Below, in pieces: positions 5,661-38,270 of a DNA stretch of 64,000 nucleotides (position 1 is the stretch's first letter; each line of letters starts with the position of its first letter). This DNA comes from Paragordius varius (taxonomy: Eukaryota > Animalia > Nematomorpha). A program made the position numbers and the translations under genes. The notes beneath the pieces are model-generated. The model made no database searches. It saw only the letters and a program-made list of their open reading frames with translations, and was not told where the DNA came from. The stretch is from NCBI GenBank assembly GCA_964247055.1, contig OZ176057.1:5146001-5210000 (forward strand), written 5' to 3'.

Positions 5661-8600
5661 CTATGAAATAAATTAAAAAATATTTTTATTATATTTTAAA
5701 TTTAAAAAATTAATTTGAGAAGGATTTAATTAGGAATATTGAATTTATTAAACAAATATTATATTTTTCCAAGTTTTTTGATTTTTTGGGACATTGGTTT
5801 TTATAAAAAAAGAAGATTTCATAAGGTTTGACCTCTGCATTATTTATTCTGAACTGCAATATACGGAAAAAAAATAATTTTTTGGAAAATATAAATATAT
5901 GTTAGCATTTATTATAAAAATTAAATTAAAAAAAATTTCGAAATAGTAAAAGCACTCAAATAATTTTTGTTTTTTTGGAAAAAAAAATGAAAATAAGTTT
6001 TAAAAAATTTTCAGATACCCCAGTGGAAGCGTATTCTAGACCACCACTTTCAACAAATTTCTTCATAATATCAAGAGTACGTTCGCCTCCAAAATCAATT
6101 GGCTAAATAATTGAAAATAAAAACATATTTTAATAGTGTAAAAATATTCATACAAAAATATAAATTTAGCTTAAACTAAAAATTTAAAATCCACCCTTAA
6201 AAATAAATTATATGTGTATTTGGGATAATCATATAAGTTTAGTATTTTTTCAATCTCATATAAATATGAAAACAAAATATTTTTTGTCTTTAAACGGAAT
6301 TTTATTTTTTTTAATAATAAATAAATATAGAATGGGAATTTTCGATATTCAAAAAACAAATAGTTTATTTTAATTGAATTTGAGGTGTAAAATATTAATA
6401 ACCATTTATAAAAATGAGGATTTGGAATTTCAAATTTTTTTTAATAAAATAATGTAAATAAAACATGCATTTTTGAGAATCTAAACTTTCCGTTGCATTA
6501 GTAAAATTTCTTTTGTGGTTTAAAAAAATGAACATGGCAAAAAAATAAATAAGTTTGGACGTTTCTTGCCATTTTAATTGAAAAAATAAATTAAATTTTA
6601 TAAAACCACCAAAAAAATGTTTTTTGTTCAATTTTTAATAAAAAATCTAAAAAAAAAACGTTACTTTTTTAACTGTTTCGCCCTCTTTGAGAGCTGGGAA
6701 AAGTTTTATGGTCGGAAAACTGCTAACTGTAATGCCCTCAACTTCATTCGCGGTAGAATCCATTTTAGCAATAGTTACCTATTATTAGAAAAAAATCTTT
6801 TATAAAAAAAATATATACCGTAATAATTGAAATTTATTTATATACATATACAATTGTTGATTTAAAGTAAAAATCAAACTTATAAATATACAGTAAAAAT
6901 TGAAATTATACAGAACAAAACGTAAAAATATAAAGACAAACTTTTTTTTTCAAAAAACAGACAACCATACTTTTTCATGCCTAAATTTTTCCTCTATAAG
7001 CTATTTAATACAATAGCGAAATACATATTGATTGTGTAACCAAAATACATCATTGATTATTTCATACTTTGCAGTTTAAAACAATGAGTTATATTTAAAA
7101 AAATCAAGGATTAAAAAGTATGGGGTTGTTATCTTTTGAAGTGCAAAAAATATTTGTCTTTTTATTTTTACGTTTAGTCCGTCCTTATAATTACAATTTT
7201 TACGGTTAACAACCAATTGTAAAAAAATATAATCATACATTTTTATGACAATTTTAAATTCTCTTGGAGTCGGAAATTCAAATTATATATATTAATATAT
7301 TCCAAAAACCATTTGTGTTTCAAAAAAATAAATAATATATCAAGTTTTTTTTTATTAAATTTTCTCTTTTACAAAAAGGAAAATTAAAAATAAAATCTCA
7401 CTTTTAGGTCAGGGTGTTGTTCAAAATATTGTCCCAATTCAGCATAAATAGGTTCCAGGGCTTTACAGTGACCACACCAGGGGGCATCTTTGAAAAAAAT
7501 AAAAAATATTATAACACAATAAAAAAATTAGTATTCATTTGACTTATTATACCACAACATTCTTTTTTGGAGAGGGTTTTAAAAAGTTAAAATATCTATA
7601 GTATTGCAAAAACACGTTAATTCACTTAAAAAAGATGATAGAAAAGCCAAATTAAATAATATAAATTTCGTTCAACTTTAAAAAAAAGCGAAAAAAAAAC
7701 TTACAAAACTCAACTAAAACATTCTGTTTGGGGTCCATAACGACTTGCTCGAAATTTTGTCCGACTACAATCTTAACTGGGCTTTTATCCCAATCTTCGG
7801 GTACGTTTTGAGACAACAGATGAGGCTATGAAATAAATAATTTTTATAAGTTTTTTTTAATATAAAACAAACTTTTCCTATTTCGATTTTGTTTACAATT
7901 TTAATATTTATTGTATTGTTTGGATTAACCTTTTTTTAAATATTATATAATATAATTGAAATCTTACTTATAGTTTATTAATAATAAATTAAACTAAATC
8001 TCTGATTAATCATTATTTATTGAAAAAAAGGACTTATACAGCCAAACATTTAATTAAATTTTCAAAATTTAAAAAATGTCACCAAACCTTCTCAAAAACT
8101 ACTACTATTTTAATCTTGTTAAGAAATCTTCACATTTTATAAACAAAAAACTAATTGTTTCAATCAATCCGAATAAACCTAGCAAAAACAACAACACTTT
8201 GGTCTTACCTTAAGTTTGCCCTGCATAAATTGTTCACCCCATTGTACAATTTCTTGTAGTGGAATAATATGTCCCGAGTGTTTTTCTTTATGCGTTTCCT
8301 CATACTCGGGTTTATACTTTTTCATTTCAGGCGCCAAATCTATAATACGAAGCGTAGGTAAGTCCGAGTGAGCAATGCCAAAAAATTCCAATATTCTTCC
8401 ATTCATATCATCACCGGAATCAAGGAAAACGGATAAAAGCTATAATGTAACACATAATGAGTGTGTGATATGTTTTAAGATAGATAAACATATTAGCAAC
8501 AGTACAGTATTGGTTAATCACTAAATTTTAAGTAAAACATAAAAGACAAAATAAAAAGTAAAAACACTTAAAAATGTTTCAAATGTATCGTCTGATTACA

Positions 8601-11600: not shown

Positions 11601-12426
11601 AGCAATAAAATGGTGAATAAACCATAATGAACATAGAAATATATCAATTAACTAATTATCAAAAAAATGGATAAAAATTAGAGAGAGAGATCATATTAAG
11701 CTAAAAATAATGGTTAATCCTGTACACTATCTTAGATTAAAAGGATTTTCTGGCAAATTATACCATTAAAATTCACCATTAAACATTTCAAATTGGTCCT
11801 TAAACAATTTAAATTTACCCTTGAAGGTTTAAAAATTCATTCTTAAACATTTCCAATTTTCCCAAAAAATAAATATGAGTTTTTGGGAATCGAAAATAAA
11901 ATTATATTTAATATAGAGAAAACAATGTTAAACTATTAATTTTGAAGAATATTTAATAACGACATAATATGGAGATTATTATTATTTGCCACATATTGCT
12001 TGATAGGAAAGTTTCTATGACTTCTAATTGTAAAGGTAGGCAAATAATAATAATCTCCATATTATGTCGTTATTAAAATATACCATGAGGGTATATTTGG
12101 CATTTCAATAAAGAGCATGTTGAATTAGCCAGAAATTACAAAATGTTTTTTGGGGGTGAATTTAAAATGTTTAAGGGTTAAATTTGAGGTGTAAATGGTA
12201 TAATAAGTTATGAAAGTGAAATGTAGTTTGATCTGGAACTTTTTTTCAAAACTCAATTTTAAAGGTAAATTTGGCGTATCTACTTATTCTTGATAAGATA
12301 TTAGAAGCTTAAGATTAAACTAAAACCGTTTCTTTCCTAGTAGTTTTTTGTAAAATATCAATTTAAATATTGTCTGGGGGTATATTTAAAAGTAAAAATA
12401 TGGGTTGTTGTTAACTGTATAACTAT

Positions 12427-12472
<46 letters not shown>

Positions 12473-15400
12473 TCACATGCCATATAAATCATTAGTAAAA
12501 CAAAACATATCATTAATAAACGACGAGAATCGAAATAAAAGTCAAACAATCAAGCAGGCAAACAAACAATTTAAATATTGTCTGGGGGTATATTTAGAAG
12601 TGATTTGTTAACTGTATAACTATATACATATATATCACTCCCACATACCATATAAATCATTTAAGAAGTACAAATTAAAGTCGACGAGAATCGAAATAAA
12701 AGTCAAACAAGCAAACAAACATACCATTGGGATAGTCGACAATTTGTGTCGTGTTTCGACGCAATTTGAGCGTAGGATAGGATTGAATTGCAAACATTTT
12801 GGCAAAAGCTGCATTTTCCGTCGCATCAATCTTAGCAATCTTTATGGTTTCACAGATGGCTTGATTAGGATTGTCGGGTGACTTGGCACATTCATCCACC
12901 AGCTGGCCCAATTTACTGTATTCAGGGGCTAGGGCTTTACAGTGACCACACCAGGGTGCATCTAATATGATAAAAGACAGTAAAGTTATACGGACAAAAC
13001 GTGAAATATTAAGACAAACAAATATTCCAAACAATCTTGATTTTTTCAAATATACAGTAGCGTATGGAGTAAAACAATATTCGTCCATAAAAGAATAAAA
13101 AAATGTTTTTTTTTAAAAAAAACAATACTAAATGTAAATACAAATATCAATAATATCCCCTTGTTTTTTTAAATAAAACAATTTATTATTCTATTATGGA
13201 CAAATATTGTTTTACTCCATACGCTACTGTATAAGTAACTCATTGATTTAAACAGTAAAGATTGAGATGTATATTAATATCATAATAAATTATTTATTTC
13301 GGATTTTGTAATTAAATGATTTTTGTAGGATATTAAGTTGTTAGGTTATGTTTAAAAAACAATTTTGTCTTTATATTTTTACATTTTGTCTTTATATTTT
13401 TACATTTTGTCGATATGATTTCCATTTTTACTGTAAAAAGAGATAAATACACACGTTATTTTTTAAGTTTATAAAAATTATATATTGTATGGACATTTGC
13501 TGCCTTATTCACATTGTAATTGGTTGATTGGTAAACACACACTAGTGGCAAAAAAACAACAAAATGCTAAAATTTTACAATTTTTGTTATTTTTTCCTAT
13601 CTTACATTATACTTTAATAATTTTAATCATTGTGTTTTGTTGTTTTTTCATACACACTACTGTGTTACCAATCAACCAACCAAACAGCATTAATTTTGCT
13701 GAAAAAACAAACATACCTAAATCACACGATTTTATAATAACATTTTAAGTTCAAAATCGTAAACAAATTTATCTAGGTAACATCAGTAATGATAATGGGG
13801 ATGCCCAAACAACCATATCACATAGAATCAACTCGACTGGGCAAAATTTAACCAACTCAATTATGTATTAACACATAAGACATAACCGTCTAGGCCTACA
13901 AAAGCATCAAAATCAGGACTATAAAGAAGGGGAGATATAATGATAAAATATATGAGGATAAATACCACCATAAATGAACTAGTACCAATAACAGTTTTTA
14001 TCAAAACAAATAGATTTCGTTATTTTGGCCACATAGACAGATCTAGTCTCTGTAAAAGAAATTTTTGATTTACATATCCCTACTCTCGCACTCCCCTAAC
14101 TAAAAAGAGAGGCCTAAAAAAACTTGAATCAAATCATAGAACAGGACTTTAAATTCCTAAACATAGCTCGAAATGCAACAAAAGATAGAGATATATATTG
14201 TTAATTAATCGATAGAATATAAGTATCTGGGCCAAAAAAATAATACTCAATGTATTAAACAGGGGTGCCAACACGTGGCCCGCAAAAAATTTGTAAATTC
14301 GTAAATTTATAAAAAAAGTGTTCATAAAATCTGAGTAAAATTGATAATTCTTAATAATAAACAATTTTTCCAAATAAGTCTATCCATTTGGCAACGTAAA
14401 AATGTGTTATATTGTGTGTGCTGACATTTTACTGTCTTATATTATAATCAAACAAAGTAATTAATATGAATTTCCGGTCTGAAAATGCGGCCCAACAAAT
14501 AATTTTATAAAGAAAAAATTCTGCCTGCGATGCCATTTTTGTTGAAGACCCCCACACCCGACTGTTCTAAATATTAATTGTACATAATAGTCTGTATACG
14601 TTGAATGGCTCCAATCGTGTATAACAATAAAAATTTATATATATATATATATATGTCCATAAAATAGAAATAAAAATTTATATAAATGTGCTCAGTATAT
14701 ACATGACAAATCAACTAGAAATGCGAATTTAGGTCAACTACGTTTGTTTTCGTTGGTTGGCAGGTCTTTCTAAAAAATATTTTTTGCTTTAAAAAAATCT
14801 AATTTTGCATTACATTTTAGCAAAAATCACGAGTATATACTTTGAACTTTTATAGTGCAACATGAATTTTTTTGATAATTAGTCATTAAAATATATATAA
14901 TTTTTATTTACATTGTAAGTAAAAAACAGCTGATACAATAATGGAGATATGTATATACAGTAAAATTTGTAATTATCTAGATGAATTATTAAAACTAACA
15001 GACAAAATTTTTTTTTATACAAACAAGATTTTTTTATACGGAAAAATCGAAATAGGATATGAAGAAGAGCCCTCAAATATTGATAAATAATAACCCTATA
15101 ATTCTAGTCGGCTAAATATTTACTATGTATTTTTCAGGAAGCTTTAAAACTATAACATAGAATTTGATATTCACCGACTTTAAAATGAACCATTTTTGAT
15201 TAAACATTAATTAAGATATTATATGAATAGGATTAAATAAATCTTGAATTTTTAACTAAAAATAAGGCAAAATTTCCCTTTTACATTTTATTTAGTCCAT
15301 CACCCTGTGACATGATTGCAAAATGTAAAATTCAAAAAAACCTTATCATAACCATACTCAATTTAAAGAAACTTTTTTACTATTGAAAAATAATAATATT

Positions 15401-18400
15401 CCAAATTTTAATCATATTAATCTGATATTATACAATGTTTCCTTCATATGCATCATAATCTTATAATAAGGTTAAATCAAAAATACCATTTGCACTTCAA
15501 GGGTGTCCTTGAACACTTCAAGTTGGTCCTTAAAATTTGTAAATTTTGATTAAACCATAGATTTTGCATGTATTTTTAATTTTATATTTTTTAACCTAAT
15601 TTTCTTTATTTATTATATATTTATTCATTTAAAAATAAAAATTATTTAAAAACCACTTTTATTTCAAATTTTTTTCCGATCTAAAAATTATTAATTCTAA
15701 CATGTTTTCAATGTAAATAATAACCCAGAAAACTTATATATTTTTTTATAAATATTTAGAATAATTTCAAGTATTTAACAATGATATACGGTTTTTCAAT
15801 GATTAAAAGTTGATATTGATTTAAAATTTATCTCAAATAATAGAAAATAGTTTACAAACGATAAAATAGATGAATGATATACGATTCGATTGATAAAAGT
15901 TAAAAACAAAAAAAAATGCCAAAGGACCATCTTGAAATGTTCAAGGACCAACTTGAAGTGTTCAAGAAGGACACTTTTGAAGTGCAAAATATTAACAATC
16001 CAATGGGCTCCTACAGTGACTGTATTTTTAAATTAAATTACATATCATCAACTCTCTTTCATATATTGTTACGTGTGACAACTTTTAATTAACAAGAAGA
16101 TGGGACACTGCTCATATATATATCTTACCGTATAAGCTCATTAATCAGACGATTAAATTTTATTCGTCTACCTTTAGTATCACATATAACTACAATATGC
16201 TAATTAAGAATTAATATAAAAGAGACGCAATGATCATTTCTTAATATAATATTTAAATGAAAATAACATCAATTTAATGATAATGAATTGTAAAAAAAAC
16301 TAATGGAGTAAAATAATTTAAACACTGGTATATGCCCTAAGAAATATTATGACGGAAAACAATTACTTTGACCCTATCGATCGCAATAAATTAGAACGGA
16401 GACAAGTTTCAGAGTTTTTTTACATGATTGTAATGAAGAGATTTCCAACTAGATATAGGTTGAAATATAAAATATTTTATGATGGTGTATAATATATTTA
16501 TCATCCCAATTTTCCACATCTCATCAAAATAAAGGATATTAGCTATCAAAAAATAGATTCAACTTGAATATCTTACAACAAAGATCATAGGAATTTTCAA
16601 GTAATAAATTTAAGTTTTTAAACAAACATTATTTAATATTTTATCTATATGTTCATAATATATACTTAAATCCTTGTTATAAAACATTCTAGATACTTCT
16701 TTTATATTATTATCCATATTTAATTTCTTATTTAGAGCGCGTAATTTGTATTTAATTTCATGGAAAATATACTTAATAGGGTTTGATTGAGATGAATATG
16801 GTGCCAAAAAAATTAAATTTTCGAATCCCTTATTTCGAGATTAACGCCGAATAGGGGCATTATCTAAAATTATATAGGATGATGAAGGTATTATTTTAAA
16901 AGTATATGGATGAGCTTGAATCAATGATCACATTGTTGGTGTAAGGGAGAATTTTCTACAATAACGAAAGCCAAGAGGTGAAAATATAAACTATTTGGCT
17001 ATGATTGGAATAAACAGAGTGATAAAATATGAATATAAATCTGACCCATACAAGTAGGATGATATATATCATTTTTTACAGGAATTTTTTAAAGTAATAC
17101 CTTCATTATCCTATATTTCCCCTATTCATCGTTATTCTCGAAATAAGGAATTCGAAAATTTAATTTTTTTTGCCACCATATTCACCTCAGTTTAACCTTG
17201 AGCGTATTTTCCATGAAAATAAACACAAATTACGCGCCCTAAATAAGAAAGATTTAAATATGGATAAAAATATAAAAGAAGTCTCTAAAAGGTATTATAA
17301 TAAGGATTTAAGTAAATATTATGAACATGTAGATAAAATATTAAATAATGTTTGTTTGAAAAAATTAAAATTACATGAAATTTATATAATTTTTGTTGTG
17401 AGACAATATAAATTAAATTATATTTTGATAGCTATTATAATTTTTTTAATTAGATAATACGGTGTATATATATTATTTAAAATGTTTGGGATGATTAAAA
17501 TATTATTTTATAAATCATCATTAAATATTTTATATTTCAACCGCATGCTTGTGTCTAATAGTGGGAAATCTCTTCAATACAATTATCTAAAAAACTGTAA
17601 AATATGTTCCCGTTCGAATTTATTGCGATCGAGAGGGTCAATCACTAATTGTTTTCGGACATAGATATTTCTTAAGACATTTAGAGTTTTGATTTTTTTC
17701 TAGATTATTTATTTTTTACAATTAATTTATGATGTTATTATATAAATAATATATTAATAAATGATCATTGCGTCTCTTTTACATTATTTTTAAATAGCAT
17801 TTTGGTTATAATTGATATCAAAGGCAGACGAATAGTATTAGCCGTCTGCTTATTGAGTTTATACAGTAAGATGTTTAAAATTAAGCAGAGTCCCATTTTC
17901 TCGTTAATTGAAAGTTGTCCCTAGAAATATATTGAAGAGAGTTGATGATATATAAATTAATTCAAAAACAGGGTCAGTGTAGAAGCCGATTGGATTGTTG
18001 ATATTTTCGATTTACCTTATTATAAGATTATGCTGCATATGTAGGAAACATTGTATAAAATAAAATTAATAAAATGAAAATTTGGAATATTATTATTTTT
18101 TTATTAATATCTTTAATAAGTATAGTTAATAAGGTTGTTTTACATTTTACAATTATATGACAGGGTGATTGGTGTTAATTATGTAAAATTGAAATGCCTT
18201 ATTTTTAGTTAAATAAAATGCAAGATTTGAATCCTATTCAAATAATGTTAATTAATGTTTAATTAAAAATGGTTAATTTTAAAGTTGGTGAATATCAAAT
18301 GTTATTAAACATTTAGCGGATAGATTCATAGATTTATTATTTATTAATATTAAAGGTGAGGGCTCCTCTTCATATCCTATTATATTTCGGTTTTTTGTCC

Positions 18401-21400
18401 GTATAAAAATTTTTTGGCGGCATATTAAAAATTTTAATCTTTTGATGATTTTAACAATATGGTTGTTATAAAAAATTTGTCTGTTATAAAATTCGTCCGG
18501 ATAATTACAAAAATTACTGTAATATAAATATGTACTATTTTGCACACACGCACATACAGACACAAGGTGTTAAAACAATTATGAGATAATCATCAAATAA
18601 TTATCATAACTGCAAAAAAACATTAGCCCCGTTATTTAAAAGATAAAAAAAATTTAAAATATATATAATCAGTTCCCCATAAATTATTATTTAAATAATC
18701 AAAAAAAAGACATCAATCTCATCTGAAAGAAAAATACAAACTCTAGTACTTTAAAAGTAAATTTATATAAAAAACTTGTAGTTTATAAAACAAGGAAAGA
18801 ATTAACATTGTATTTTTTTTGTTCAACAACAGAGAAGCAACAAAATCAATTTTGAGTAAAGTATTTAATTTTAATCATTTAATTAATAAATTATTAATTA
18901 ATTAGTTAATTGTAGAAGATAATCTTTAAAGTTTTTTTATGCAAAAAAAACTTTGAAAAAAAATATAAATGTTTAAATTTTACCTAAAAAAACAAGTCAA
19001 AAAAGTAAAATTAAAGGGAAAATAAATATATTTCGCTACAATTTGGAAGACAAAAAAACAGCAATTTTAACCTAAACAGGGTGTTGAGATTTTATTGCTT
19101 TAAATCATATATATATATATAGTAAAAACATTCGTATACCAGAAAAATTCAATTTTTTTCAATAAAGCTGATAATTTATCTTTCAATCTATTATTATTAT
19201 CTAATTAATGCATCAGTGCTACATCTCCTAGCAAGGAAAGTTATATTGAAATTTGTTAAAACCAACCCACCCATTCTTTTTCAGCACATAAAACAATATA
19301 CCAGATATCCTCACGCGCATGTCGATTCAAATAATGAAATAAAAATCCTTTTTATACTGATTGATACTTTTTTTAACGTAGAGATTTCAATCATTCACCA
19401 ACACCAGATTTTGTAAATTTCAAAATAAATATACGGAAAAAAGAATATTGTACAATATACAGATTAGTAAATAATTCAATGGTTAGTAGATTTACATTCA
19501 ATCCTACGGTATATTCCACTTTTTCTCTGTTCTACTATCTACAGTTAATAGCTATCCTAATATGTCAAATTATTTTTATCCATTTTCCAACGGCTAACGC
19601 TATCGAATTATTACCCGAACAGTCATCAAATAAGAACCTAGGAGATGTCGGTCCAGAATTTTGGCACAATCTTCAAGACGCCCATTTTGAAAGGCAAGGA
19701 CCTAGCGATAGGCTAGGAGAAACGGATGCATTAAATTATATGGCAACCGGGCTTATAGGTTTAGCGGGCTCTAATGGGCCAAATAGTGCTGATGACGGAG
19801 AAACAAATGAAATAGCCGATAAAACAATTAGCAGTAATGCGTTAATACCACACGGGTATGTGGTAAACAGTTTAAACACCAAACTACGAAGAGAAGGTCA
19901 ATCATTCCTACGCCACAACGACGATAACATGGGAATTAGCGGTGGAGAAGGAGATTATAGTTTAACGAACGATGAACCACTCATATATATAAGGGATCAT
20001 GTGCTACCTTTAAATCATGATCAAAATAGACGCATTGGTGGTAGTTTTGCCAAACGATATGATCGACCCATTATGACGACGGCAGACGATTTTGATACAA
20101 CAGATGGGGATGATGAAATGTCACATAGATCAAAACCCATGCCCCAAACGTATGATTGGTGGCCATTTTACAGTGCAAGGTATCTCCCAGACCCTGGTCT
20201 CATGCGACTTATAGCGGAAAGAGAACGGGTTAGAGAACAAACGCTTGGTACAAACACAATCAATGTCCAACCAGCTAACAACAATGTGAACGATAATACG
20301 GACAAAGACAATAACGAAAGTAACGAGAGGCTGAAATTTTTTACGACAAAGGCTATAAAACAACACCAACAACAATTGAAGGTTATAATAATTGGTTAAT
20401 TTAAACATCTTTTAATTTAAATTTGAAATATAGAGAAATTGTAATATCCAATTTCTTATTTTAAACAGGTAAGGTCTCAACCGAATCAAAATTACCCCAT
20501 GTTAACGATATCAAGTTTGCCGGATAATAACCCAAAATGTCCCAGGGGGTATGATTTTGCTGGATATAAACCGCTTAAATACTTTGATATTGGGAGACAG
20601 AAAAATGTAGCAATAGGTAGAGAGGTTATATGTCTAAGTATTAGCAATACTTTAATGATAAAAAATTCAGAACAGGACAATCAAGATAGAGAAATGGCAT
20701 CCGTTGATTTGTTTCTCGAGGATACAAAATTGGATTGGAAAGGCGCTCAGAAACAATGTCAAAGTACGGGGGGCAATTTGTTAAGCATAAGTGATGACTT
20801 TGATGCAGCACATCTAGCTCGGATCCTTGACGTGTGCCGTGAACGTCTCTTGGCCACAAAAACGCGACAACAATTGAACAGACATAATATAATGGATAAT
20901 GAATGCGGTATTTGGCTAGGGGGTTCAAAACAAAATTCGGATGACAGAGACAGACGTACTAAACGGAATATTCTTTTAGGCAATTTACATCAAACCAAAC
21001 AAGTAGACTCAAACATTTCAATACTGTCGTCAAAAAGAGTAGTTGTCAAGCGAGATGCTAAAAGCCGAGATAACATCGATGTAGCGTTACAATACTCAGC
21101 TATGACGGATCCGTTAATCGATGACTTCCATCAATCAATAGATGGAATAAACCCGGATGACGAGGCCTACAATTATTACGGTGGAGACAAAGAAGGCATG
21201 AATAGCGATGAAGCAGACGATGATTTGGGACCACGTGACTACACGTATCCTAAACACACGTATGAAACACATGAACATGGTTGGAAAGACCATTATAAAA
21301 AGAGACAAAAAAAGGAGAACCGTAAAAAACAACAGGTTTCTCCGCTAGATACCCCACCGAGGTATATTACAAACAATGGGAAACAAAAACGACAATACGA

Positions 21401-24400
21401 TCCCAACCCCAAACACAGGCAAATAAAGGGGGGCAAAAACGATGATGATGGCAAGGATAAGAAAAAAAAGAAATGTCTCTACTCCCAAGGCGCTGAAGGC
21501 AAAGTCAAATTTGCTTACACCAAGTGTGGAAACAAAAATAATTATGTGTGTGAAGTGAGATACTCGGATGATAGTCAGGATCCGACAAAGGGCAGCCCAG
21601 AAAATGATTCCACCAATTACGGTGGCGATGAAGATTTGAGAGGAGGCTACTCAGCAGAAAAAGATCCAGAATATAATGATGCCGATTATGATTGGAATGG
21701 CAATACTTTTGATGCGTCAAGCACAAAAGGCAGTGTCCATCCATCTTGGGCCCAAGCCGAACATAATCATAATGACAATGATGCTAAAAGAGAAAGAAAT
21801 ATGTACTCAAATCGAATTCCATCATCTCATGAATCACAAGAAGAAAATCATCACAACGGAAACAATCATCACCAAAAAGCTACTCCGCAAAACACATTAA
21901 ACCAATATATTGGAAAAGTGAATGATAATAATTATCCACATCATAATAGTTTTGATAGAGAAAGTCAGAATTCTTTAAAGCCATCGGTTATTATACCCTT
22001 TTGGCAGCGTCAAGGCATATCCCTTAGTAGGTCAGGGACGACACATTTTCAGCAAAACCAACCTTTACCTTCTTCCCCACTTAAACCTAGAACGATTGCC
22101 CTGGAACAAGATACACTAACAGACAAACATGTTCATAGTAATAAACACTATGTTGATAATTTTCATAACACACATATTATAAACTCGAATGCAAAATCAT
22201 CACGCTCGCACCCTATTATAGATTTAATTGCAGACCGAGTATCACCCATACACAATGATGTATCATATCCGACCGGAGTAATATTTTCATATCCAAAATC
22301 AAGCACAATCTATAAACAAAGGTAAGATGTTTTATTAGACCTTCCTTTGTAGAGTGGTTCATATATGTATTTAGAACACAAAAAAACTTTATTCCTAAGC
22401 TTTTAAAGAGGTCAATGAAAATTTTAAACGTGCCTAACTAAAATAATCATTGTCAAACAATATTAATTATAAAAAATGCTATTTTTATACATGTGTCAAC
22501 ATTACAATAAAAAATATATTTATACGGACTAAACAAGAAAATTTAAAGACAAATATTTTTTCTTTAAAAGGCCGCTGTTGTTTTCTAAATTTACCTTTTG
22601 TCTACATAGTTAGAATTTTATTGTAAATACTTAACAAACAAGAATATATAATTAATAGATTGCAATTTTCAGTACCGTATAGTCAGTTATCAACCATCGA
22701 AGATGAAAATACTAACAGTCATCGGTACTCACTCAATAATAATTTAACACCCAGGAGCCATGAACAAAAAAGTGTGAATCAATACTATCCATTTATTTCA
22801 GGCTCTAATAATGATGCCGGCGGCATTAACTCAATACAAGATAAACATCGATTAGGCTTAGCAAAAGCTTCCCATACTCATCAAACAGGACAAACAGACG
22901 CCCAAATAAATGATAGGTTAGTTGAAATTTAGATTTTTTTGTAATTATCATACGTATATATACAAGATAACATAATATATTATGAGTTTTAATGGTTGCT
23001 TATTTCACACTATAGTAGGGCAATTTGCAACACATGAGTGCATGGAAAAAAAGGAAAATTGTTTTTTCTATACACTCTATGTTGCAAATTGCCCAGCTAT
23101 AGTGTGAAATAAGCAACCATTAAAATGCATACTGTATATTATGCGTTATTATCATTTAGATTGGCTGGGAACGATTACATAAAAATAGCTTTAAAGTATA
23201 ATCAAATTACCAGTTCACAAGGAGTGGTGCCGGGTAAGACTTATCAAAGTCCAGGTATTCGCTCAACATTCAACAAAATAAAAACTACAAATCCCCCACC
23301 TGTGGCTCCATTTCCAACGCTTTATAGAAGGCGAAATACACCAATATTTCGACAAATGGAACAAGCATCATCGACAACTTATAGTGATAAAAATACCCAG
23401 CGACCATATGCACGCCATTCTGTGGCGCCCAAATTGCAAAACAAACCGACCAAATCGCCAATAACTATCAAACTTTGGCAGAGTCGAAAACTCATTTTCC
23501 CCCGGAATGTATGGGGCCGGCCAAAAACCAACGTTGAACCAGTCACCCTAAAGCCCAATTCACTTTTGGATAAATCGACTGCTGACAATTTTCAACCAGA
23601 AAGCCCATACCTAAGTGAACAGCGAATGATTGAGATACGAGACTTTGAAGAACCGCCAAAAGATAAATATTCAACGGCTAACCATGGAATAGACATTACA
23701 GCTAGGGCGACATCAAACAAAATGGATCGTAGGTTCAATTTGTGGGCAAAGAAAGCGCATCAAGTCGAACAGAGAGCAAAACAGACAGCAATACAACGAT
23801 TAGAGGATGCCTTTAAACGCTTAGAGACTACGAGACCCAATAATGTTCTTTACTTGGGAACAAACAACAACAACAACAATAACAGAAATTATGACTTAAA
23901 TCGATTTATTCGGTTACCCATAGTTGATGAATCTAAAGACATAGAAATTCTTAGAAAAAATCGTCAACTAATTATCAATGAAAGATCGGTCAATGCAATA
24001 CCAGTGTGGAATATCAATTATATGCCAAACAATTTATCCATGGAAACAGTGCCTACCTCATCTGTGTCCGTAGATCATCGTCATATGTGGCGCAAAAAAA
24101 TATTACGTTATAAGAGAAATGTCGATCTTACAAGTGGGATTGGTTTTGTACCAAATTTTGACACATTGGTACCAAACTCGGAGAACGAAAATAAACTTGA
24201 ACCCCCACGAAAATCGACACGATTCTATTCATCTGTTGTTACAGGGGTAGAACAACCTCGTGATGAAAGTAGAACAGAAAACACGTTACCAACTTTGATA
24301 GGGGAAGAAGGTCCAGAAGACACAAACTATGCAGCAACAAGTCCCGATCTGCCAGCCAATCATGAAGGAAATATTGTACCGGGGAGTGGGGTCGGTTATG

Positions 24401-27400
24401 GAACCGTAGGTGATTCAAATACTTATAACCATAACCAAGCAGCCAGACCACTTGATAGCTCTAACTATCCGGCTGGGTTTGAGGTTGATTTCGAACCATG
24501 TAAAACGTATGCCAGTACGTTAAGTTACATACAAACAAATTATTATGTTAGCATGCCAGACGCGCCCATGGATGATAGAGAAAACGATAAGAATGAATTT
24601 GGAAACAGATATGACAATGAAGCTGAAAGGGATTACTCTTTTAAAATACCTAAGGTGAGTAATTCCAAAGTTTACAACAATGTCAATAATGCGGGATCGA
24701 CATTATCGCTGCATCAACAACAGCAACGTCAAAATATGGCAAAAAAAATTGGTAAAAAAATTTCTTATGATGTAAAACCATCCAAACCAAAGATAGGTGG
24801 AACAATGCAAGGAAGAGGTTTTGCTGAAAAAACAAATACTTATTCTTTTGGTGACAATCAGCCCCATTTTTATGAAGACGATACGGAAAACTCTAATGTG
24901 CTAAGTGAACAAGTTTACTTATTCAATCGTAATGGCCCAAATAGTTTGGGATCAACATTTGATTCTTTAAATGGTGGTGATTATCTGATCCCGATATCGT
25001 CAGTATATGATTTGCCAGGCCAAATTGAAGAACATGATAAACAGCAAAAACAAAAAACTCCCAGAGCCAAAGGTAAGCAATCGATTGGATTATTGCGGGC
25101 ACATGCTAAGCACACTGCCAAACGGAAAGCAAAGGGACCTAACAAGAAAAATTGGCGGAAACGAAAAGCACGGCACACACAGAAACGGCAGAGAAATACC
25201 AAACGAAAAAAACGTTCTAAAAGAAAAAGGAGTAAAGCGAAAAAACGTTACCAGGGAAAAGGCAGACGATTTAAAAGGGATGTAACTAATGTACTTTATA
25301 ACATGTCAGCAGGAAAACAGGTTAGTTATGATGATCGCCCTCTTAATATGTATCGACTACCCACAAATGGTATCACCAAAAATACGCTTGATCAAAGTAA
25401 GGAATGGGAAAATGCAAAAGACTATCAAGCCGTGTTCAATTTTGAAGCCACTAATGCACCACCCGTTAAAAGCCAATATAATGTAGTAACAGAGAGAAAA
25501 GATACAACTAAAAAGGGGTTTGTCCACTCTTTGCCCCCAGAAATTGTTAGCGATGAGGATGATGAATACATGAATAGGGTAGGGGGTCAGGCTTACTACA
25601 GCGGTCATTATGATGTAGGCGATAATGAAGGTGATAATGATAATAGCTATGCTTCAACAATTGAAACAGACTATGAGGACCCAGATGGTAGTCAATATTT
25701 ACCTGAGCTCGAGATGTATGAATCATTGATACCCAAGGAGTTTCGCGAATTTTCTCAGGGACTTCTTCATGGGAGCGTGCCATCGGAAAACCAAGAGCCT
25801 GGCTCAATAGAGAATGAAACAAACGGTTCAGAATTAAAACCGAAAGACACCAAGATAAAAAGAAAACGACATAACTCAAATAAAAACATTGGAAATCAAC
25901 AGAAAGAAGATAAATATTTGATTAGTGCAAGTCGTGATAAATCCCCAAGCAGTGACACTGTGGATAGCAATGATAAAAAAGGGCCCAAATATTCCCCTCT
26001 TTTTATACATGACGACAATACAAAAGAAGAACGTGGGCGTAGAAAGATAAAAAAGCACAACAGTCTACGCCCCATACATCACGAAGAGGAAAGTGATAAT
26101 CAAGAAGCAGTGTCAGATGACAATCATTATCATGATGACGAAGATGAGGAGCATCACCATGGCAACTCCGATGATGACCAAAACGCCCAATATGAAGAGG
26201 AAGGACCGGAACCTCAAAATTCTCAAGAGGAAAGATCAGCTGACAATGACAATGGTGGAGAAGAGGGAGATTCTGAAACGCAACCCGAAGCCCCACCCTA
26301 TGAAACTGCTGATTCTGTTGATGAACAAGGACGCCAATACCATGATGATGATGCATCAGATGAGTAATATTTTAGTTTAATTGATTTGATTATATAATGT
26401 CTCATTTTGTCATATGAACATTGTGAGAAAATTTACTAATATGGGTTTTCGTATCATAAAATTTGTACTATTTCCAAAAAAACTAATTAAATTGGTCGTA
26501 ATATTTGTGTATTTCGGTGGTTTTGAAAGTTTAAAAATTCTTTGTATCAAAAAATGACACCCAATCCTAGGAGACGAGAAACTGGAGATGAAAATGAAAA
26601 CCAATATCCAAATGATAATCGATACCATCACAATGACAACAATGAAGATGCTTACAATGATAATCGAAGATATTCGCCGGATGATAGAGAATCAGAACCC
26701 GTCGAGCCTTATCGAGGTATGGAAAGGAAAAGTGAGTCCAGGGATCAAAATAAACCTAGGCGACAAAAATACCGTTCAGATAATGATGAATCTTATTCCA
26801 ATCCATCGTACACTAAAACGGCAAAAAGGTATGCCAACTATAAACTTTATAATAAACCGTGGTATTTTGACAAAAAATTAACATTATGTATGATCCATAA
26901 TTTACTCTTGCGTTTTTTTCAGGTACGAAAGCCCCAAAAATGAACGAAAACAGGCATATTGGAACCGAATCAATGGTAATCATAATGATGGTAGACAAAA
27001 CAACAATGCCAATAAAAAATTGTACAGTAAAAATGGGGTAAGGTATGAGGTTGGAGAAGGAAAAAAACCCAGTGTCACGCATTATCGAGAAAATGCTAAT
27101 AGTAAACCAAATAATGATTGGTATGTACAAAAACGGAAAGAAGATGAGGTCAAAAGATTGCAGGGAAACAACAATCAAAATACAATTTATGGAATGCCAC
27201 CGCAAATTCAACAAAATAAGATTTGGAACGGTAATGATATATACGTAAACGTTGAATAAATAAAATAACTATGTTTAATATTCAAAAATAGGTTAATCAA
27301 TAACCATGTAAAAAAAGTAAAGCAGACGAAAACGGTATGATTTGCAAACTATAGAATAAAGTAATAAAAAAACATTACAATATTTAAAAACTGGTTTCCC

Positions 27401-30297
27401 TTTTTGGTAAAAGCTTTTTTGTTTATCATTTTTAAATTCTACTGTTCATTTGGTAATTTATTTAACAATTTAACAGATTTGGTTGTATATATATATAGTA
27501 AATAAGCTAAATAAATAATCATAATTATCAACATGAAACACATAGGTAAATCGTACGAAACTCCTTACAGCAAACAAATAATTCCATCTCCCCCTGTGCG
27601 ACATTCACGAGTAAACACAAACGTAAAAATTGGGGGATGGAGTCCCCAAACAGGACCTTATAATATACCAAGTAAGTACAAATTTAAAATTAAAACCTAA
27701 AAATATCTTACATATCCTAGAGTATTATGTAAACTCTAAACATATAGCCATTAAAATTATTTTGCAATATATATGTCAAAAATATTTTTTATATACCTAT
27801 TTAAAGGTGGAACAAACACAATAGTGATTGCCAAACCAATCCCAAATAGAAGAGTAGAGAATGGGGAAATATTACGGACGCAGGAAACAGAATACTGGAG
27901 AAATAAAATTCAACAGCAAGAAAACTTGGGCGGCGGACCTTACCAACAAAAACAGTAAATTTACATAAAATCTAATATTTGTGGGTAAGCTTTTTTGACA
28001 TACCGACCACTTTTGTTAACTTTTACATAGATTATTGCTTCACTAAAACTCTTCAAACATAATTGAACGAACTCATTCATACAATGTGATTGATTATATG
28101 TTAAAAATCTAATTAATAGTACATGTACATATATATATAATAATTGTAGCAAATGACAATTTTATAGCCGCAAATTATAATATTGACATAATATATAATT
28201 TTCGAATCTTTATTGCAGTACCCATTGAGTTTTGTGCGAGTCCATAAAATTTTAGTTATAAAAATTCTTAAAACAAATATTTGGTTTTATTATGTAATTT
28301 CTTTGAAACTGATCCTTTTAGATTTGTGGTTCCAGGAAATGTGTTTAGCGTACAACAACATCAACAACAAGACCAACAAACGAGAACCGGGCTAAATTCT
28401 CAATATCAACCATCGTACAGTCAATCCCACGTGGAACGAAAAATACCCGCAGTTCAATTTTATAATCCCCCATCTTATCCGGCCTCGGTGGCAAGAAATT
28501 TTGAAAGGTGACTTATTTGAAAAAGCATTAAAGCGAAATCGCTAAATACTAATCATTGGCTAAAAAAACTAAGTCCTTAAAGCACTCTTTGCGTGTTTTG
28601 TGTTTATCAGGTGTTAAATTAGCACTAATATATCAATATATGTATCTAATCTCTTGTACATCAACAAACACAAAAGTACAACTATAGGTATATAGGTCTA
28701 TAGTAAAAAGTTATAATTAAGCTATAAAAAACGACCAGTGCCAAGATTGACTAGGAAATATCGACATTTTTGCTCATAGTAGTATAATTGCAAATGAAAA
28801 ACAGGTAATAAATAAAATGTAAAATACACATGAAAATGATGTGATTGATTCATTCGAGTAAAGATATAATTATGTAAAAAGTCTTACATTGTAAATGTCC
28901 TTGACACAAATATATATATATGAATGCAGAGCAGGTAAAGAAGACATAGAAGAAGTTTTTTGTGCTAAACATACTTTTTATATAATAAAAATATTTTATT
29001 ATCCATCACAATGAAAAACATAGGATATACAGTAGCGTAATGCACAAAAACCTGTGCAGAATGAAACGAATTGGCATGTTTGTTTGTGGTAGATAATATT
29101 TTATACTGTTTGAGCGACTTCGAAATAGAGAGAATAAGAAATTACAATTAAGAAGTGGTCAGCGTTAAAAAAGGCTTAAAATAACTATTCTAAATTTGTT
29201 GTATTTATAATTAACCATTAGATACAATGGAATACGGTACAACCATCAACAAAAAACGGTTGGATACTCGCCTCAAGGATCTTATAACCCGCATTATAAC
29301 CGCTATCAAACACGACGAATGTACGATAGTTTAGGCCGAGAGGTTTTACTTAAAAACTTAAACTTGCCAGAAGTTGAATTGAGTTTTAAGGAAAACGCCA
29401 ACAAACAAAATAACCTGACTGATATTGTCACCGATAACAGTATTTGGGTCATCCTAAATAATAATAGCTCAGGCAATTCGAAAAATCTAGAAAAAGATTT
29501 GAATAACACACCAACAATGCGTCATCGGGGTAAACATTTTATTGTTCGGCTAAAAGCAAATTATGGGACGACACGTGGTAATGGTGACAAAAGCAGAAGA
29601 CGGAATAAACGAGAAGCGGTGACAAAAACCATCAACTTTGATGTTTATGACAATAATGAACCATTGGATTATATAGAGAAAAGAACGACCCGACGACGAC
29701 CTGTATTGCATATTCAAGATCGCTGGCATTATTACCAGAATGTTAATAAAGTAGGAAACTTAATGCTAGGATCATTATTAGATAACCCAATACAATCACC
29801 CAGAAGAAATTCACAAGGTAATGATCATGTTTACTTAAAGTATCCGGCTTATCATGCACACCCGAGTAACCCTCACAAATACATTCAATGTAGCACAGAA
29901 GGTTTTGGAACAGTAATGGACTGTTCACCTGGAACGGTTTGGGACTCAGCCTCAAAAAATTGTCACTAATTTAAAACATTATAACCTTATTTATAAATAT
30001 ATATATATATAGTATTGAATAATATTATATTTTATAAATTACACACATACACAACGTATATTTATGTGCCAAAATTAAAAACCAAATTTTTTTTTCAAAA
30101 GTTATTATTATAATAAATTAAATTTTATAAATTATATGTAACTTACAAAATTCCATAAAGATATTGTTAGAATCATCCTTTAAATCTGGAATATGCTTAT
30201 CCAAAAGAACACAAACATTATCTTCTTTCTTTTCACATATATCGGCATTTGTAAAATTAATAATTAGTCCAAAAATTAGACCAATGTAAAAATTCAT
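5568..30297 (-). CDS. P4HB: Protein disulfide-isomerase (a-b-b'-a', PDIA1/P4HB-like), 12 exons, 546 aa
   Basis: Exons in transcript order: 30297-30147, 12961-12725, 11451-11315, 10773-10621, 10277-10170, 9207-9082, 8439-8209, 7825-7705, 7487-7402, 6778-6665, 6102-6019, 5660-5568. All introns GT-AG with compatible phases; total 1641 nt. Signal peptide, two YAPWCGHCK sites, IAKxDxT-N and YPT/FPT motifs, [21 protein letters not shown] x-linker, acidic tail ending HSEL*. Confidence 0.92.
6890..7205. mobile_element. CAGTAAAAATTGAAATTATACGGACAAAACG MITE family; further copies or ends near 1490, 9820, 12978, 13430, 37770, 53140, 56880, 59928
   Basis: Recurring TA-flanked CAGT terminus and GACAACCATAC/GTATGGTTGTC inverted motif. 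Confidence 0.8.
7402..7487 (-). CDS. P4HB: PDI exon 9, second thioredoxin active site
   Basis: [29 protein letters not shown]; preceded by exon 7825-7705 ending NVLVEF+t. Confidence 0.95.
8209..8439 (-). CDS. P4HB: PDI exon 7 (b' domain)
   Basis: [33 protein letters not shown]...MKKYKP...FMQGKLK matches the PDI b' signature (RILEFFG...P); phase 0-0. Confidence 0.92.
11952..12077. repeat. Hairpin/MITE with perfect ~39-bp inverted repeats
   Basis: TTTAATAACGACATAATATGGAGATTATTATTATTTGCC and its exact reverse complement. Confidence 0.85.
12358..12720. repeat. Intronic tandem duplication (two ~150-210 bp units) with (AT)n tract, next to the PDI exon 2 donor
   Basis: ATTTAAATATTGTCTGGGGGTATATTTA and GACGAGAATCGAAATAAAAGTCAAACAA each occur twice. 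Confidence 0.75.
12725..12961 (-). CDS. P4HB: PDI exon 2, first thioredoxin active site
   Basis: [18 protein letters not shown]...IAKIDATEN...IQSYPTLK; tag acceptor, gtatg donor. Confidence 0.95.
13055..13229. mobile_element. 175-bp Tc1/mariner-type MITE
   Basis: TA|CAGTAGCGTATGGAGTAAAACAATATT...AATATTGTTTTACTCCATACGCTACTG|TA. Confidence 0.85.
13519..13681. repeat. Hairpin MITE-like element
   Basis: TTGGTTGATTGGTAA...TTACCAATCAACCAA inverted ends. Confidence 0.65.
13765..14210 (+). mobile_element. RTE-like non-LTR retrotransposon 3' remnant
   Basis: [21 protein letters not shown]..., [15 protein letters not shown](W) motifs with stops. Confidence 0.7.
14260..14552. mobile_element. hAT-like MITE
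   Basis: CAGGGGTGCCAAC...GGCCCGC...GCGGCCC...GTTGAAGACCCC termini. Confidence 0.55.
15486..15989. mobile_element. ~500-bp MITE inserted in the left arm of the long-TIR element
   Basis: TIRs TTTGCACTTCAA.GGTGTCCTTGAACACTTCAAGTTGGTCCTT; absent from the matching right-arm position (~18005). Confidence 0.8.
16905..17370 (+). pseudogene. Degenerate DDE (IS630/Tc1-type) transposase
   Basis: ...[24 protein letters not shown]...[11 protein letters not shown]...[32 protein letters not shown], with stops and frameshifts. Confidence 0.75.
19479..20381 (+). CDS. Exon 1 of large secreted precursor (signal peptide and pro-region)
   Basis: ORF 19479; hydrophobic [20 protein letters not shown] then PTANA-IELL; dibasic sites KLRR and FAKR. 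Confidence 0.8.
19479..29969 (+). CDS. Large secreted precursor (~2660 aa) with interrupted C-type lectin domain, low-complexity charged blocks and C-terminal CBM14-like domain; 10 exons; nested in PDI intron 1
   Basis: Exons 19479-20381, 20469-22321, 22659-22916, 23160-26363, 26571-26828, 26923-27230, 27546-27671, 27807-27954, 28322-28507, 29222-29969. All GT-AG and phase-compatible; total 7992 nt = 2663 aa + stop. Long GC-enriched ORFs in AT-rich background; hydrophobic N-terminus ending ANA-IE. Acceptor 26571 and donor 20381 are the least certain sites. Confidence 0.82.
20469..22321 (+). CDS. Exon 2, containing the interrupted C-type lectin-like domain (about 20538-21557)
   Basis: CPRG...[21 protein letters not shown]...GIWLGG...[insert]...KCLYSQ...[12 protein letters not shown] are the CTLD alpha1, WIGL and terminal C..C..YVCE motifs. 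Confidence 0.82.
22987..23125. repeat. ~140-bp hairpin MITE in intron 3 of the nested gene
   Basis: TTTTAATGGTTGCTTATTTCACACTATAG...CTATAGTGTGAAATAAGCAACCATTAAAA. Confidence 0.85.
23160..26363 (+). CDS. Exon 4, 3.2-kb low-complexity region with RYKR and RFKR sites, polybasic block and acidic/His block
   Basis: 1080-aa ORF; tag acceptor at 23159, gtaat donor at 26364; phase 2-2. Confidence 0.88.
29222..29969 (+). CDS. Last exon with RNKR site and C-terminal chitin-binding peritrophin-A (CBM14)-like module
   Basis: ...[37 protein letters not shown] fits the P..C/P..Y..C......C..G..W/F.....C pattern. Confidence 0.8.
30147..30297 (-). CDS. P4HB: PDI exon 1 (signal peptide and start of a domain)
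   Basis: [50 protein letters not shown]+t|gtaag. The phase-1 donor fits the ag|AT GCA CCC TGG acceptor at 12961 and gives EFYAPWCGHC. Confidence 0.85.
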
Positions 30298-36059: not shown

Positions 36060-36930
36060 TATATCAAGGTGAGATGTTTGCTTTTATACAATTAAATAAA
36101 AGTATAATAATAATAATAATAATAACAATAATAGTAAAACGTGGTGGGGAGGTTAAACTACTACAAACATTAGTTTATATTACAAATGTTGTTTGTGCGG
36201 TTAATCTATTATTGTAATATAAGGTTCATTCAAATTAGCCTGTCAGTTACCACTATAACACCACTACCCCCTTCTAACACCGTCGTTCCTCTATTTTTGT
36301 GGGGGAGCTGGTTGTCGCATGTTCCTGGGTATTGTTAGTATTTAAATTGGCGGCTGTCGGAGTAATCGGTTCGGTTTCGTCATTTGGGTTGCTCGTGCTG
36401 TTTGGTTGAGGTTCGGCAATCGTTACATAATCCTTGGCAGTGGTTACATTCTCCTTACTTGTGTTGCTGGAAGTGGTAATTCGTAGTTGTGGCTGGTGTA
36501 CTATTTGGTCGGCGTGTCTCCTCACAACTTTCTCCCGGTCTTTGTCCCATACCTTGTATGACAATAGCCCTGTACCGTCCGTGATCTCTCCAGCGCGCCG
36601 CCCTGGACTTAAATTCATTTTTAATCATTACTAGGTCATTAATGGCAAACTGCCGTCGGGCGGCCGGTGGATCTAACATCGCCCTACTATTTAACCCGGT
36701 TAAGGGGGTATGGGGTGTTGGCTTGAACATTAATTGGGCCGGGGTTTCTTTCGTTGTTGAGTGTATAGAATTTTTATACGCCCATAGGCTAGTGTTTAAC
36801 GCTTCGTGGGTGGATATCGCATTATTTTTTATCGTACCCACTAACCTTTCTACCATCCCATTAATTTGGATGGTAGGGGGTAAAATATGTTTCACCCCTA
36901 TAATCATTTTTAAAGCCTTGATTTGCTGGC
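36060..36930 (-). mobile_element. Ty3/Gypsy LTR retrotransposon 3' remnant (integrase, polypurine tract, start of 3' LTR)
   Basis: NGMVERLVGTIK...WAYKNSIHSTTKETPAQLMF...F..NDLVMIKN...SYKV...RRHADQI (frameshifted); AGAAGGGGGTAGTGG followed by TGTTATAG at 36260. LTR far end uncertain. Confidence 0.85.
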
Positions 36931-38270
36931 TACTCGAATCATGTTATTGATGAATAGATGTAAATTGTATACATTTTATAAATTGTAAAAGAGTGCTTTA
37001 TATAGGAAATATTGTTAAAAGTACAATTATTACTGTATTATTTATCTAAAATGATTTAATTAATTTTTCTCACATATATATAAATTATATTTTTTATTTA
37101 TATTTCATATATCCTAGGAAGTGCATGTTTGCAAGTGTGTTACGCCCCGCCATTATTAGAAGAGCTGGAAAGACTTTTTAGTCGAACATAATTAATACAT
37201 TGTATTTATTAGCTTTAAACATGGATTTTTTTCTTTATAAATTTTAATAATATAACATTTATCATTCAAATTCACCCGAAAAATAAATTTCTCGTTTTGA
37301 GCTAATCTAAATCATCATAGATAGTATGATAATAAGTTTTTATGGTATAATAGTTTGTCATTATTATATATATTTTGTTAAAAGCATTTCTTATATTAAA
37401 AATTAATATACAGGTAGATTTAGATTTTCACAAAAACATTTTATTTTTAAGGGTGAATTTTAAAATGTTTTTTAATTAATTTATAATATATAATGTTGTA
37501 TGTATATCGCTCCTATAGATATATATATATATATATATTGTTACTATATATTTCAAAATATTTTTGGAGTTGGTTTTAGTTCAAGAGAACAGTGTTTCAA
37601 TGTGAAAATACTGAAATTATAAATCATATTAAAATTGAGCTATTAGTGCTTAAATCAGAAACAAGCCACATGGATATCTTGTGGGGCCCGCGAAAAATTT
37701 TGAAAAATACCAAATTAATATGAAATGGTATTTTATTTATACCTGGTAAAATTGGTATCTTTTTGTAAATTTACAGTAAAAATTGAAATTATCCAGACAA
37801 AACGTACAATTATAAAGAGATTTTTTTTAAAACCATAAATAAACCCTAAATATTTTCTATCACAATTTTAAACTATACTTGGGTTATGTTATCAATTTAC
37901 ATCACTATTTCACCCTTTACAATTTGAAACTATGAGTTATATAAAATTTAATATAAATGTCCTTATATATTAAGGTTGTCTGTTTTACAATTTTAACTAA
38001 TTTAAATATATCTATGATGCAAATTTTGCTACAACAAACTAGCTAAAAATTGGTGAAATATATAATAAGTAATTTTATTAACCTAATTTACAGTCTTATG
38101 TTTAAAATCCAATAAAATATTTATTAATGGCAATTTATTTTTTCCAATGTGGCCAGTGAAGTCATTTGTGGTAGGAACCTCTAGTTTATACAGATATTAA
38201 TATAAATATTCAATCAAGTTAAGCCTGAATGTAATGATATTTTTCATTCAGAAACATTCTTTTTTTAAAA

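Follow-up and report, generated by a model that had tools for sequence, protein, structure and literature searches.

Gene structure at the locus

We analysed a 64,000-nt stretch of the genome of the hairworm Paragordius varius (contig OZ176057.1, positions 5,146,001 to 5,210,000; hereafter the window), which carries a plus-strand gene model at 19479–29969. Its features support a single secreted precursor of several modules as the predicted product; a C-type lectin-like domain (CTLD) lies close to its N-terminus, and its very C-terminus is a CBM14-type module. A first-pass annotation of the DNA had proposed that the gene encodes a furin-processed polyprotein that would release polycationic, polyanionic, lectin and chitin-binding parts.

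The G+C content of the window is 27.3%, in agreement with the value of 26.93% published for the hairworm Gordionus montsenyensis (bioRxiv 10.1101/2023.06.26.546503). Between 19.5 and 30 kb, G+C is 0.32–0.39, and the long open stretches of this region are confined to the plus strand. The model consists of ten exons that sum to 7,992 nt, giving 2,663 codons plus a stop without an internal stop codon. All nine introns (87–714 nt) are of the GT-AG type and the phases match at every junction, as read from the sequence. Exon G+C is 0.35–0.42 in ten of ten exons versus 0.16–0.28 in nine of nine introns. The exons, all on the plus strand, are as follows.

19479–20381, plus strand: exon 1, 301 codons, ending in phase 0; start codon and predicted signal peptide; donor AAG/GTTATA
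20469–22321, plus strand: exon 2, 1,853 nt; split CTLD and first RxKR site; acceptor TTTTAAACAG, donor AAAG/GTAAGA
22659–22916, plus strand: exon 3, 258 nt; acceptor AATTAATAG, the only one that fits the phase
23160–26363, plus strand: exon 4, 3,204 nt, 1,067 whole codons, one Cys; donor GATGA/GTAATA
26571–26828, plus strand: exon 5, 258 nt; acceptor CAATCCTAG, donor AAAAG/GTATGC
26923–27230, plus strand: exon 6, 308 nt
27546–27671, plus strand: exon 7, 126 nt
27807–27954, plus strand: exon 8, 148 nt
28322–28507, plus strand: exon 9, 186 nt
29222–29969, plus strand: exon 10, 748 nt, the last three being the stop TAA (29967–29969); RNKR/EAVTK (29601–29612) and the CBM14-type module

Beyond the signal peptide, exon 1 is acidic (net charge −13) and Cys-free. 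Both the polybasic block and the majority of the polyacidic block described below lie in exon 4, together with two isolated RxKR sites.

Natural variation was read from DNA contigs of four public runs, which cover 24000–29990 and thus begin downstream of introns 1–3. Among the indels listed, the exonic ones were +3 (25292), +3 (26976), +6 (27042), −6 (29354), and −15 (29635), and the intronic ones were +1, +2 (26912), −4 (27269), −14 (27365), +4, +6 (27766), and +2 (28582). All five listed exonic indels are multiples of three, and the chance of all of them keeping the frame is ca. 4 in 1,000; five further indels lie outside this list. Of 40 listed single-letter differences, 28 were exonic (12 synonymous and 16 non-synonymous), corresponding to a rough ratio of non-synonymous to synonymous rates (dN/dS) of ca. 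0.4, which is only indicative as the list is partial and 83 further differences lie beyond it. Taken together, the splice phases, the G+C contrast between exons and introns, the indel pattern and the pattern of single-letter differences point to a constrained coding gene, most likely a single one. The assignment of these exons to one gene in the first-pass annotation is thereby supported, indirectly, by phases, G+C contrast and indels.

The region 24000–29990 is present in DNA filed under two organism labels from two studies, with 95–100% identity and many differences between samples. One sample (X3) has 77 differences across 4.7 kb in three contigs. Such population data could give a proper dN/dS for each segment of the gene.

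Several alternative splice sites were rejected. A nearer acceptor for exon 3 (TTTTCAG at 22672) yields a stop, as does the AG at 26529 as the acceptor of exon 5, for which 26571 alone fits the phase. An alternative donor of exon 6 at 27038 is disfavoured by a natural in-frame 6-nt insertion just 3′ of it; since the insertions after 26976 (+3) and 27042 (+6) are both in frame, the part of exon 6 past 27038 was read as coding. Were a candidate 23-nt micro-intron at 29818–29840 spliced out, the frame would run into a stop and the significant match to CBM14 would be lost. Separately, intron 3 contains an inverted repeat (22975–23137) with 58-nt arms that are 90% complementary and a 47-nt loop, which resembles a miniature inverted-repeat transposable element and has no second copy in the window.

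Modules, composition and convertase-type sites

A putative signal peptide was seen by inspection at 19479–19601, in agreement with the first-pass annotation. It has a 16-residue hydrophobic core followed by PTANA/IE, with an A-x-A cut site and predicted cleavage after PTANA. Right after the ATG there is also a candidate in-frame 63-nt intron (19482–19544) that starts with GTTAGT and ends with a pyrimidine-rich TCTACAG. With this intron removed, the signal peptide would shrink from 41 residues, including a long n-region, to a textbook length of 20, and the frame is kept either way.

The 2,663 residues comprise 10.0% N, 8.0% S, 7.3% K, 7.3% D, 5% Y, and 0.5% C (13 Cys), as expected from the earlier description of a mostly Cys-free chain rich in D, N, K, and S. 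The mature chain would have 12 cysteines, of which eight lie in the lectin region, one in exon 4 and three in the CBM14-type module. The protein looks largely intrinsically disordered. No internal repeats were found in the protein when the exon products were compared with each other by BLASTP (the strongest match had E 0.019, over 30 residues), a single trivial 18-nt repeat was returned by Tandem Repeats Finder, and no paralogue was found within the window.

Two blocks of opposite charge stand out.

25081–25278, plus strand: polybasic block, 66 residues, net +34; holds RKKR and RSKR and ends with RFKR/DVTNV
26041–26700, plus strand: polyacidic block, 151 residues, net −38; interrupted by intron 4, with most of it in exon 4 and the rest in exon 5

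For exon 4, the charge extremes in 60-residue windows are +33 and −24, whereas 2,000 shuffles of exon 4 gave mean extremes of +10.7 and −10.0 and most extreme values of +20 and −18. The opposite-charge blocks that had been noticed in the first pass are real.

Exon 2 encodes a domain that is split by a long insert.

20538–20927, plus strand: N-terminal half of the CTLD; CPRGY...ICLSIS hairpin and WLGGS, by sequence alignment to PDB entries
20928–21473, plus strand: charged insert of 182 residues in place of the CTLD long loop, with RTKR at its start
21474–21554, plus strand: C-terminal half of the CTLD, 27 residues; aligns to QLCVSAQGPEGHWKVKKCEDKNFYICK of a receptor CTLD (domain 3 alignment)

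In a PDB sequence search, five of five matches were proteins with C-type lectin domains (best whole-sequence E 2.5e-5). Four of them are multi-CTLD receptors of the mannose-receptor family, including the yolk sac IgY receptor, DEC-205, and PLA2R, and CD93 is the remaining one. The alignments of this search include each half of the domain (query residues 83–160, with the helix-1 region and WLGG, and residues 334–362). The canonical CTLD elements occur in order as KQC, WLGG, KKC, TKC, and YVCE, providing the four cysteines, the WIGL-type motif and the C-E end. The Xlink profile reached 13.3 bits, under its cut-off, on the N-terminal half. No EPN/QPD or WND motif is readable in the insert or beside strands 3 and 4. 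Because the long loop is replaced by the insert and these motifs are missing there, sugar binding is unlikely; the domain is probably a C-type lectin-like scaffold or a protein-binding CTLD, not a sugar-binding lectin. The domain is an example of a compact fold that tolerates a very large disordered loop.

The helix-1 cysteine of a canonical CTLD is disulfide-bonded to the cysteine of the last strand. Cleavage at RTKR would probably leave a two-chain domain held together by disulfides. Since this site lies in the long-loop insert and the canonical disulfides bridge both halves, no free lectin part would be released there, contrary to the part list of the first-pass annotation.

The C-terminal module is short.

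29850–29963, plus strand: short CBM14 (peritrophin-A type) module, 38 residues, three Cys; the protein ends one residue later

The cut-off of Pfam CBM_14 (PF01607) is 22.1 bits; the exon open reading frame (ORF) scored 27.1 bits and an 88-residue piece 29.4 bits (E 9e-7; profile positions 8–44 of 53). Among solved structures, the best sequence match was the chitin-binding domain of the mite allergen Blo t 12 (2MFK, E 5.9e-6), followed by EHEP (8IN3, E 1e-3), a sea-hare protein with three CBM14-type modules, and by the mite allergen Der p 23 (4ZCE, E 0.086). The Y of HKYIQC and the W of GTVWD align to aromatic positions in all three proteins.

The chain has four isolated RxKR sites, and they and the pentapeptides predicted to follow cleavage lie exactly where the first pass had put them.

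20955–20966, plus strand: RTKR, in the context RDRRTKR/NILLG; predicted new N-terminus NILLG
24106–24117, plus strand: RYKR; predicted new N-terminus NVDLT
25267–25278, plus strand: RFKR, at the C-terminal end of the polybasic block; predicted new N-terminus DVTNV
29601–29612, plus strand: RNKR, in exon 10; predicted new N-terminus EAVTK

There are four additional Rx[KR]R sites, namely RDRR (20946), RKKR (25204), RSKR (25213), and RGRR (26032), which brings the total to eight, six of them RxKR. The further dibasic sites that had been mentioned amount to 79 dibasic pairs in the protein. RxKR occurs six times versus 0.8 expected from whole-exon shuffles, and versus 1.7–2.2 expected when residues were shuffled within windows of 10–30 residues (ca. 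threefold, P 0.007–0.016). The motif is moderately enriched beyond local composition. All eight Rx[KR]R sites sit in disordered-looking regions, and every RxKR is inside a short basic cluster, two of the six within the 66-residue polybasic block. The four isolated sites have N, N, D, and E at P1′ and I, V, V, and A at P2′, a pattern that is favoured by furin and that was noticed post hoc. Convertase processing of the protein is plausible.

Cuts at the signal peptide and at the four isolated sites would give five pieces.

Predicted piece 1: 426 residues, net −11
Predicted piece 2: 857 residues, net +26
Predicted piece 3: 387 residues, net +22; the polybasic block is its 66-residue C-terminal tail
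Predicted piece 4: 834 residues, net −18
Predicted piece 5: 118 residues, net +1

Acidic and basic pieces do alternate, if only mildly, and the strong blocks are local features within pieces 3 and 4. Because the predicted pieces are only modestly charged, the earlier picture of a polycation, a polyanion, a lectin and a chitin anchor is a simplification, and the release of clean polycationic and polyanionic parts is not borne out.

Genomic setting and the weighing of readings

The 10.5-kb gene lies antisense in the ca. 17-kb first intron of a gene for protein disulfide isomerase (PDI), which is on the minus strand at 7655–13112 and 30150–30297. The first PDI exon (ca. 30150–30297) encodes a signal peptide; its last codons read IFMEF, and one more base precedes the GTAAGT donor. 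The next exon (within 12678–13112) encodes a Thioredoxin domain (E 1e-15) with WCGHC. The join across ca. 17 kb is supported since it restores a hallmark 11-residue motif, and a PDB sequence search with the presumed first exon was uninformative. The stop codon of the nested gene is ca. 180 nt from the donor of PDI exon 1, and an AATAAA at 30112 is ca. 40 nt from that donor.

Traces of mobile elements occur elsewhere in the window.

42660–43324 and 45005–45421, plus strand: two PIF/Harbinger-type transposase fragments (DDE_Tnp_4, E 2e-9 and 4e-23) with near-identical peptide stretches; probably decayed copies
36277–36943, minus strand: open frames resembling a retroelement integrase (HILPPTIQINGMVERLVGTIKN); a 162-residue stretch gave no Pfam match at E 0.01
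16613–17454, opposite strands: two open stretches with nearly the same peptide (PYS.QSNP), similar to the C-terminus of a DDE transposase; probably inverted decayed transposon copies

No Rfam family was found in the window.

We favour, with a probability of about 0.5, a lineage-restricted, secreted, disordered matrix protein that has a chitin-binding-type terminus and is probably trimmed by convertases. The protein would enter the secretory pathway, where a furin/kex2-type convertase would cut at some or all of the RxKR sites to yield large pieces, the first two of which would remain linked via the disulfide of the lectin-like domain. The pieces would then be deposited in a chitin-containing extracellular matrix, for which the candidates are the cyst wall, the cuticle of larvae or juveniles, and the egg string or eggshell. 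Docking would occur via the CBM14-type module of either the uncut protein or the 118-residue C-terminal piece, and multivalent electrostatic contacts in the matrix would come from the charged disordered stretches.

Several observations weigh against this reading. The signal peptide was called by eye. Pfam Lectin_C gave 12.3–14.8 bits, below its cut-off of 22.6, and covered profile positions 2–35 only. The lectin fold that had been announced near the N-terminus consequently holds as a CTLD-like domain, on the PDB matches and the four cysteines, and not as a domain that passes Pfam or has readable sugar-binding motifs. AlphaFold runs without an alignment were uninformative for both the lectin region and exon 10, with a predicted local distance difference test (pLDDT) of 35 and 32, respectively. 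Basic clusters can also serve roles other than cleavage. The contigs of the four runs pass straight through the introns without joints, and were identified as DNA on that basis. If the donor of exon 4 is unused, an in-frame TAA follows directly 3′ of it at 26365–26367.

The CBM14-type module raises a point of its own on the same side. According to published structure comparisons, every solved CBM14 fold has the same two disulfides (PMC4844120, PMC6128652). The first links strand 2 to the beginning of loop 1, and the second is located in the C-terminal part (PMC4844120). The module of exon 10 has three cysteines (IQC, MDC, and KNC) where the short type has four. The C-terminal pair is kept, the strand-2 cysteine of the first core disulfide stands alone, and its N-terminal partner is absent anywhere in exon 10. 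We speculate that this leftover cysteine may bond with the single cysteine of exon 4 or with another molecule. Moreover, the title of Soh et al. 2015, as cited in PMC12609036, reports Der p 23 to be without chitin-binding activity. Because the module has three cysteines, lacks the partner for the first disulfide and resembles a reported non-binder, the chitin anchor is hypothetical. What stands of the CBM14-type chitin anchor proposed in the first pass is a module at the C-terminus that scores above the Pfam cut-off; its core disulfides are incomplete.

As the main rival reading, the same gene could encode a single giant mucin-like or proteoglycan-like secreted chain that is left uncut, with basic clusters whose ligands would be polyanions (nucleic acids, glycosaminoglycans or material associated with chitin) and with much of the low-complexity bulk being neutral expansion. 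We consider this possible, if on the doubtful side. It fits the confinement of all RxKR motifs to short basic clusters, a third of them in the polybasic block, the enrichment of only threefold (P ~0.01), and the lack of internal repeats or of the repeated released units typical of true polyproteins. However, the four isolated sites have furin-favoured P1′ and P2′ residues, albeit recognised post hoc, an exposed R-x-K-R in a secreted disordered chain is likely to meet late-Golgi convertases, and there is some constraint among the listed single-letter differences.

A wrong join or the presence of two or more genes, the first ending, for example, at the TAA of 26365–26367 and the second carrying the CBM14-type module, is unlikely. 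That in-frame stop lies directly past exon 4 if the donor GTAATA is skipped, and the longest intron (714 nt) precedes exon 10. Against a division, no exon downstream of exon 4 offers a start codon with a signal peptide, although CBM14 modules are extracellular; the nine junctions are in phase with canonical sites; the acidic composition runs on unbroken from exon 4 into exon 5; and introns of 87–714 nt contrast with the kilobases between neighbouring genes in the window. We regard as very improbable that the gene is decaying or silent, its frame persisting without present function in a young duplicate or a captured sequence in the PDI intron. The lack of detected relatives and the nested position amid transposons (the DDE_Tnp_4 fragments and the integrase-like ORF) would suit such a history, but the frame is open over 7,992 nt in a 27% G+C genome rich in stops, five of five listed exonic indels keep it, synonymous changes are in excess among the listed differences, and the G+C contrast between exons and introns is sharp.

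The favoured secreted matrix protein has a bolder variant, in which net-acidic and net-basic disordered pieces, released from the single precursor by a convertase, together with a small chitin-docking piece coacervate on chitin as a one-gene, hairworm-specific glue or wall (egg string, eggshell or larval cyst). This is a long shot. If true, a single gene would suffice for a complete adhesive or matrix system, one without relatives in other animals.

Hairworms are one of the least studied animal phyla, and we know of no molecular knowledge of the hairworm eggshell, the glue of the egg string, the wall of the larval cyst or the cuticle of juveniles, which bears chitin. The gene is a concrete candidate for a component of the eggshell, egg-string glue, cyst wall or juvenile cuticle.

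Relatives and comparison with known systems

Relatives were searched for exon by exon, using exons 1, 2, 4, and 10; exons 3 and 5–9 were partly scanned against Pfam only. An exhaustive HMMER search with the 1,080-residue ORF of exon 4 against 1.84 billion representatives gave 0 matches. Word-index searches, which cover proteins of 0.55–1.75 times the query length and leave full-length relatives outside their reach, found no relatives with exons 1, 2, or 10 in libraries that may hold little hairworm data. NCBIfam gave no match, and an Atlas feature search with exon 4 returned nothing usable. In the Atlas language-model feature search with exon 1, the nearest proteins were arthropod prohormone precursors with scores <0.9 and low recognition, which is a lead only. 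As far as the searched libraries reach, the predicted protein is an orphan, and the earlier remark that its architecture was not recognised as a named family agrees with the lack of detected relatives for these four exons and the empty NCBIfam result.

Within the modules, likenesses to known proteins are clear. Blo t 12 (2MFK) and Der p 23 (4ZCE) share HP-x-N/D-P/V-HKY/F-I-x-CS with the exon 10 module (HP-S-N-P-HKY), and all three are without the second cysteine of the six-Cys consensus. Der p 23 and the exon 10 module both end right after the last shared cysteine. However, the mite proteins are gut or peritrophic matrix proteins of 50–140 residues, whereas the exon 10 module caps a chain of 2,663 residues. 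Chitin binding varies among short CBM14 members. The domain of exon 2 has the same N-terminal Cys hairpin, W-x-x-A-x-x-x-C...LLSI helix 1, and WIGL-like WLGG as the CTLDs of the mannose-receptor family (PF00059; FcRY/PLA2R/DEC-205), as well as the same C-terminal pattern C...G.W/F..x.C.....Y-V-C-E. In contrast to the receptor CTLDs, it has two extra cysteines, and its long loop holds the 182-residue insert with a convertase-type site.

Precursor processing also has counterparts. In the nematode apical matrix, the kex2/furin-like BLI-4 cuts cuticle collagens and ZP-domain proteins (reviewed in PMC11304992). The BLI-4 substrates resemble the predicted protein as precursors of a secreted matrix that carry R-x-x-R or R-x-K/R-R sites; they are cut before assembly on the way out of the cell. 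They have one site beside a collagen or ZP domain, whereas here four to eight sites lie along a disordered chain without either domain. Nematode polyprotein allergens and neuropeptide precursors likewise combine a signal peptide, putative in the protein described here, with several dibasic or RxKR sites. Unlike these repeat polyproteins, the protein has no tandem homologous units and no amidation-type cassettes, and its predicted pieces are 118–857 residues long.

The closest comparison in overall build is with the chitin-matrix proteins of ecdysozoans. Disordered, low-complexity secreted proteins are a major part of the chitin-based ecdysozoan cuticle (PMC9629831), and the nematode eggshell is built by proteins with chitin-binding domains (PMC5603424, PMC3514041). 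Insect peritrophic mucins and CPAP1, the eggshell proteins CPG-1, CPG-2, and CBD-1 of Caenorhabditis elegans, and low-complexity proteins of the pharyngeal cuticle combine a signal peptide, at least one ChtBD2/CBM14 module and long low-complexity stretches that are disordered, charged or glycosylated. The predicted protein is of the same build, with a putative signal peptide, and the known proteins end up in an extracellular layer that contains chitin (PMC9629831, PMC5603424, PMC2063922, PMC3514041). The predicted protein differs from them in having no sequence relationship outside CBM14 and no Ser-Gly chondroitin-type or Thr/Pro mucin repeats. It also has an extra CTLD, blocks of positive and negative charge and RxKR sites, and its CBM14-type module is single, terminal and cysteine-poor. 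The gene is an interesting orphan with two unusual modules and not a new system. Moulting animals are known to have many proteins of its kind, both disordered secreted proteins associated with chitin and matrix precursors processed by convertases (PMC9629831, PMC5603424, PMC11304992).

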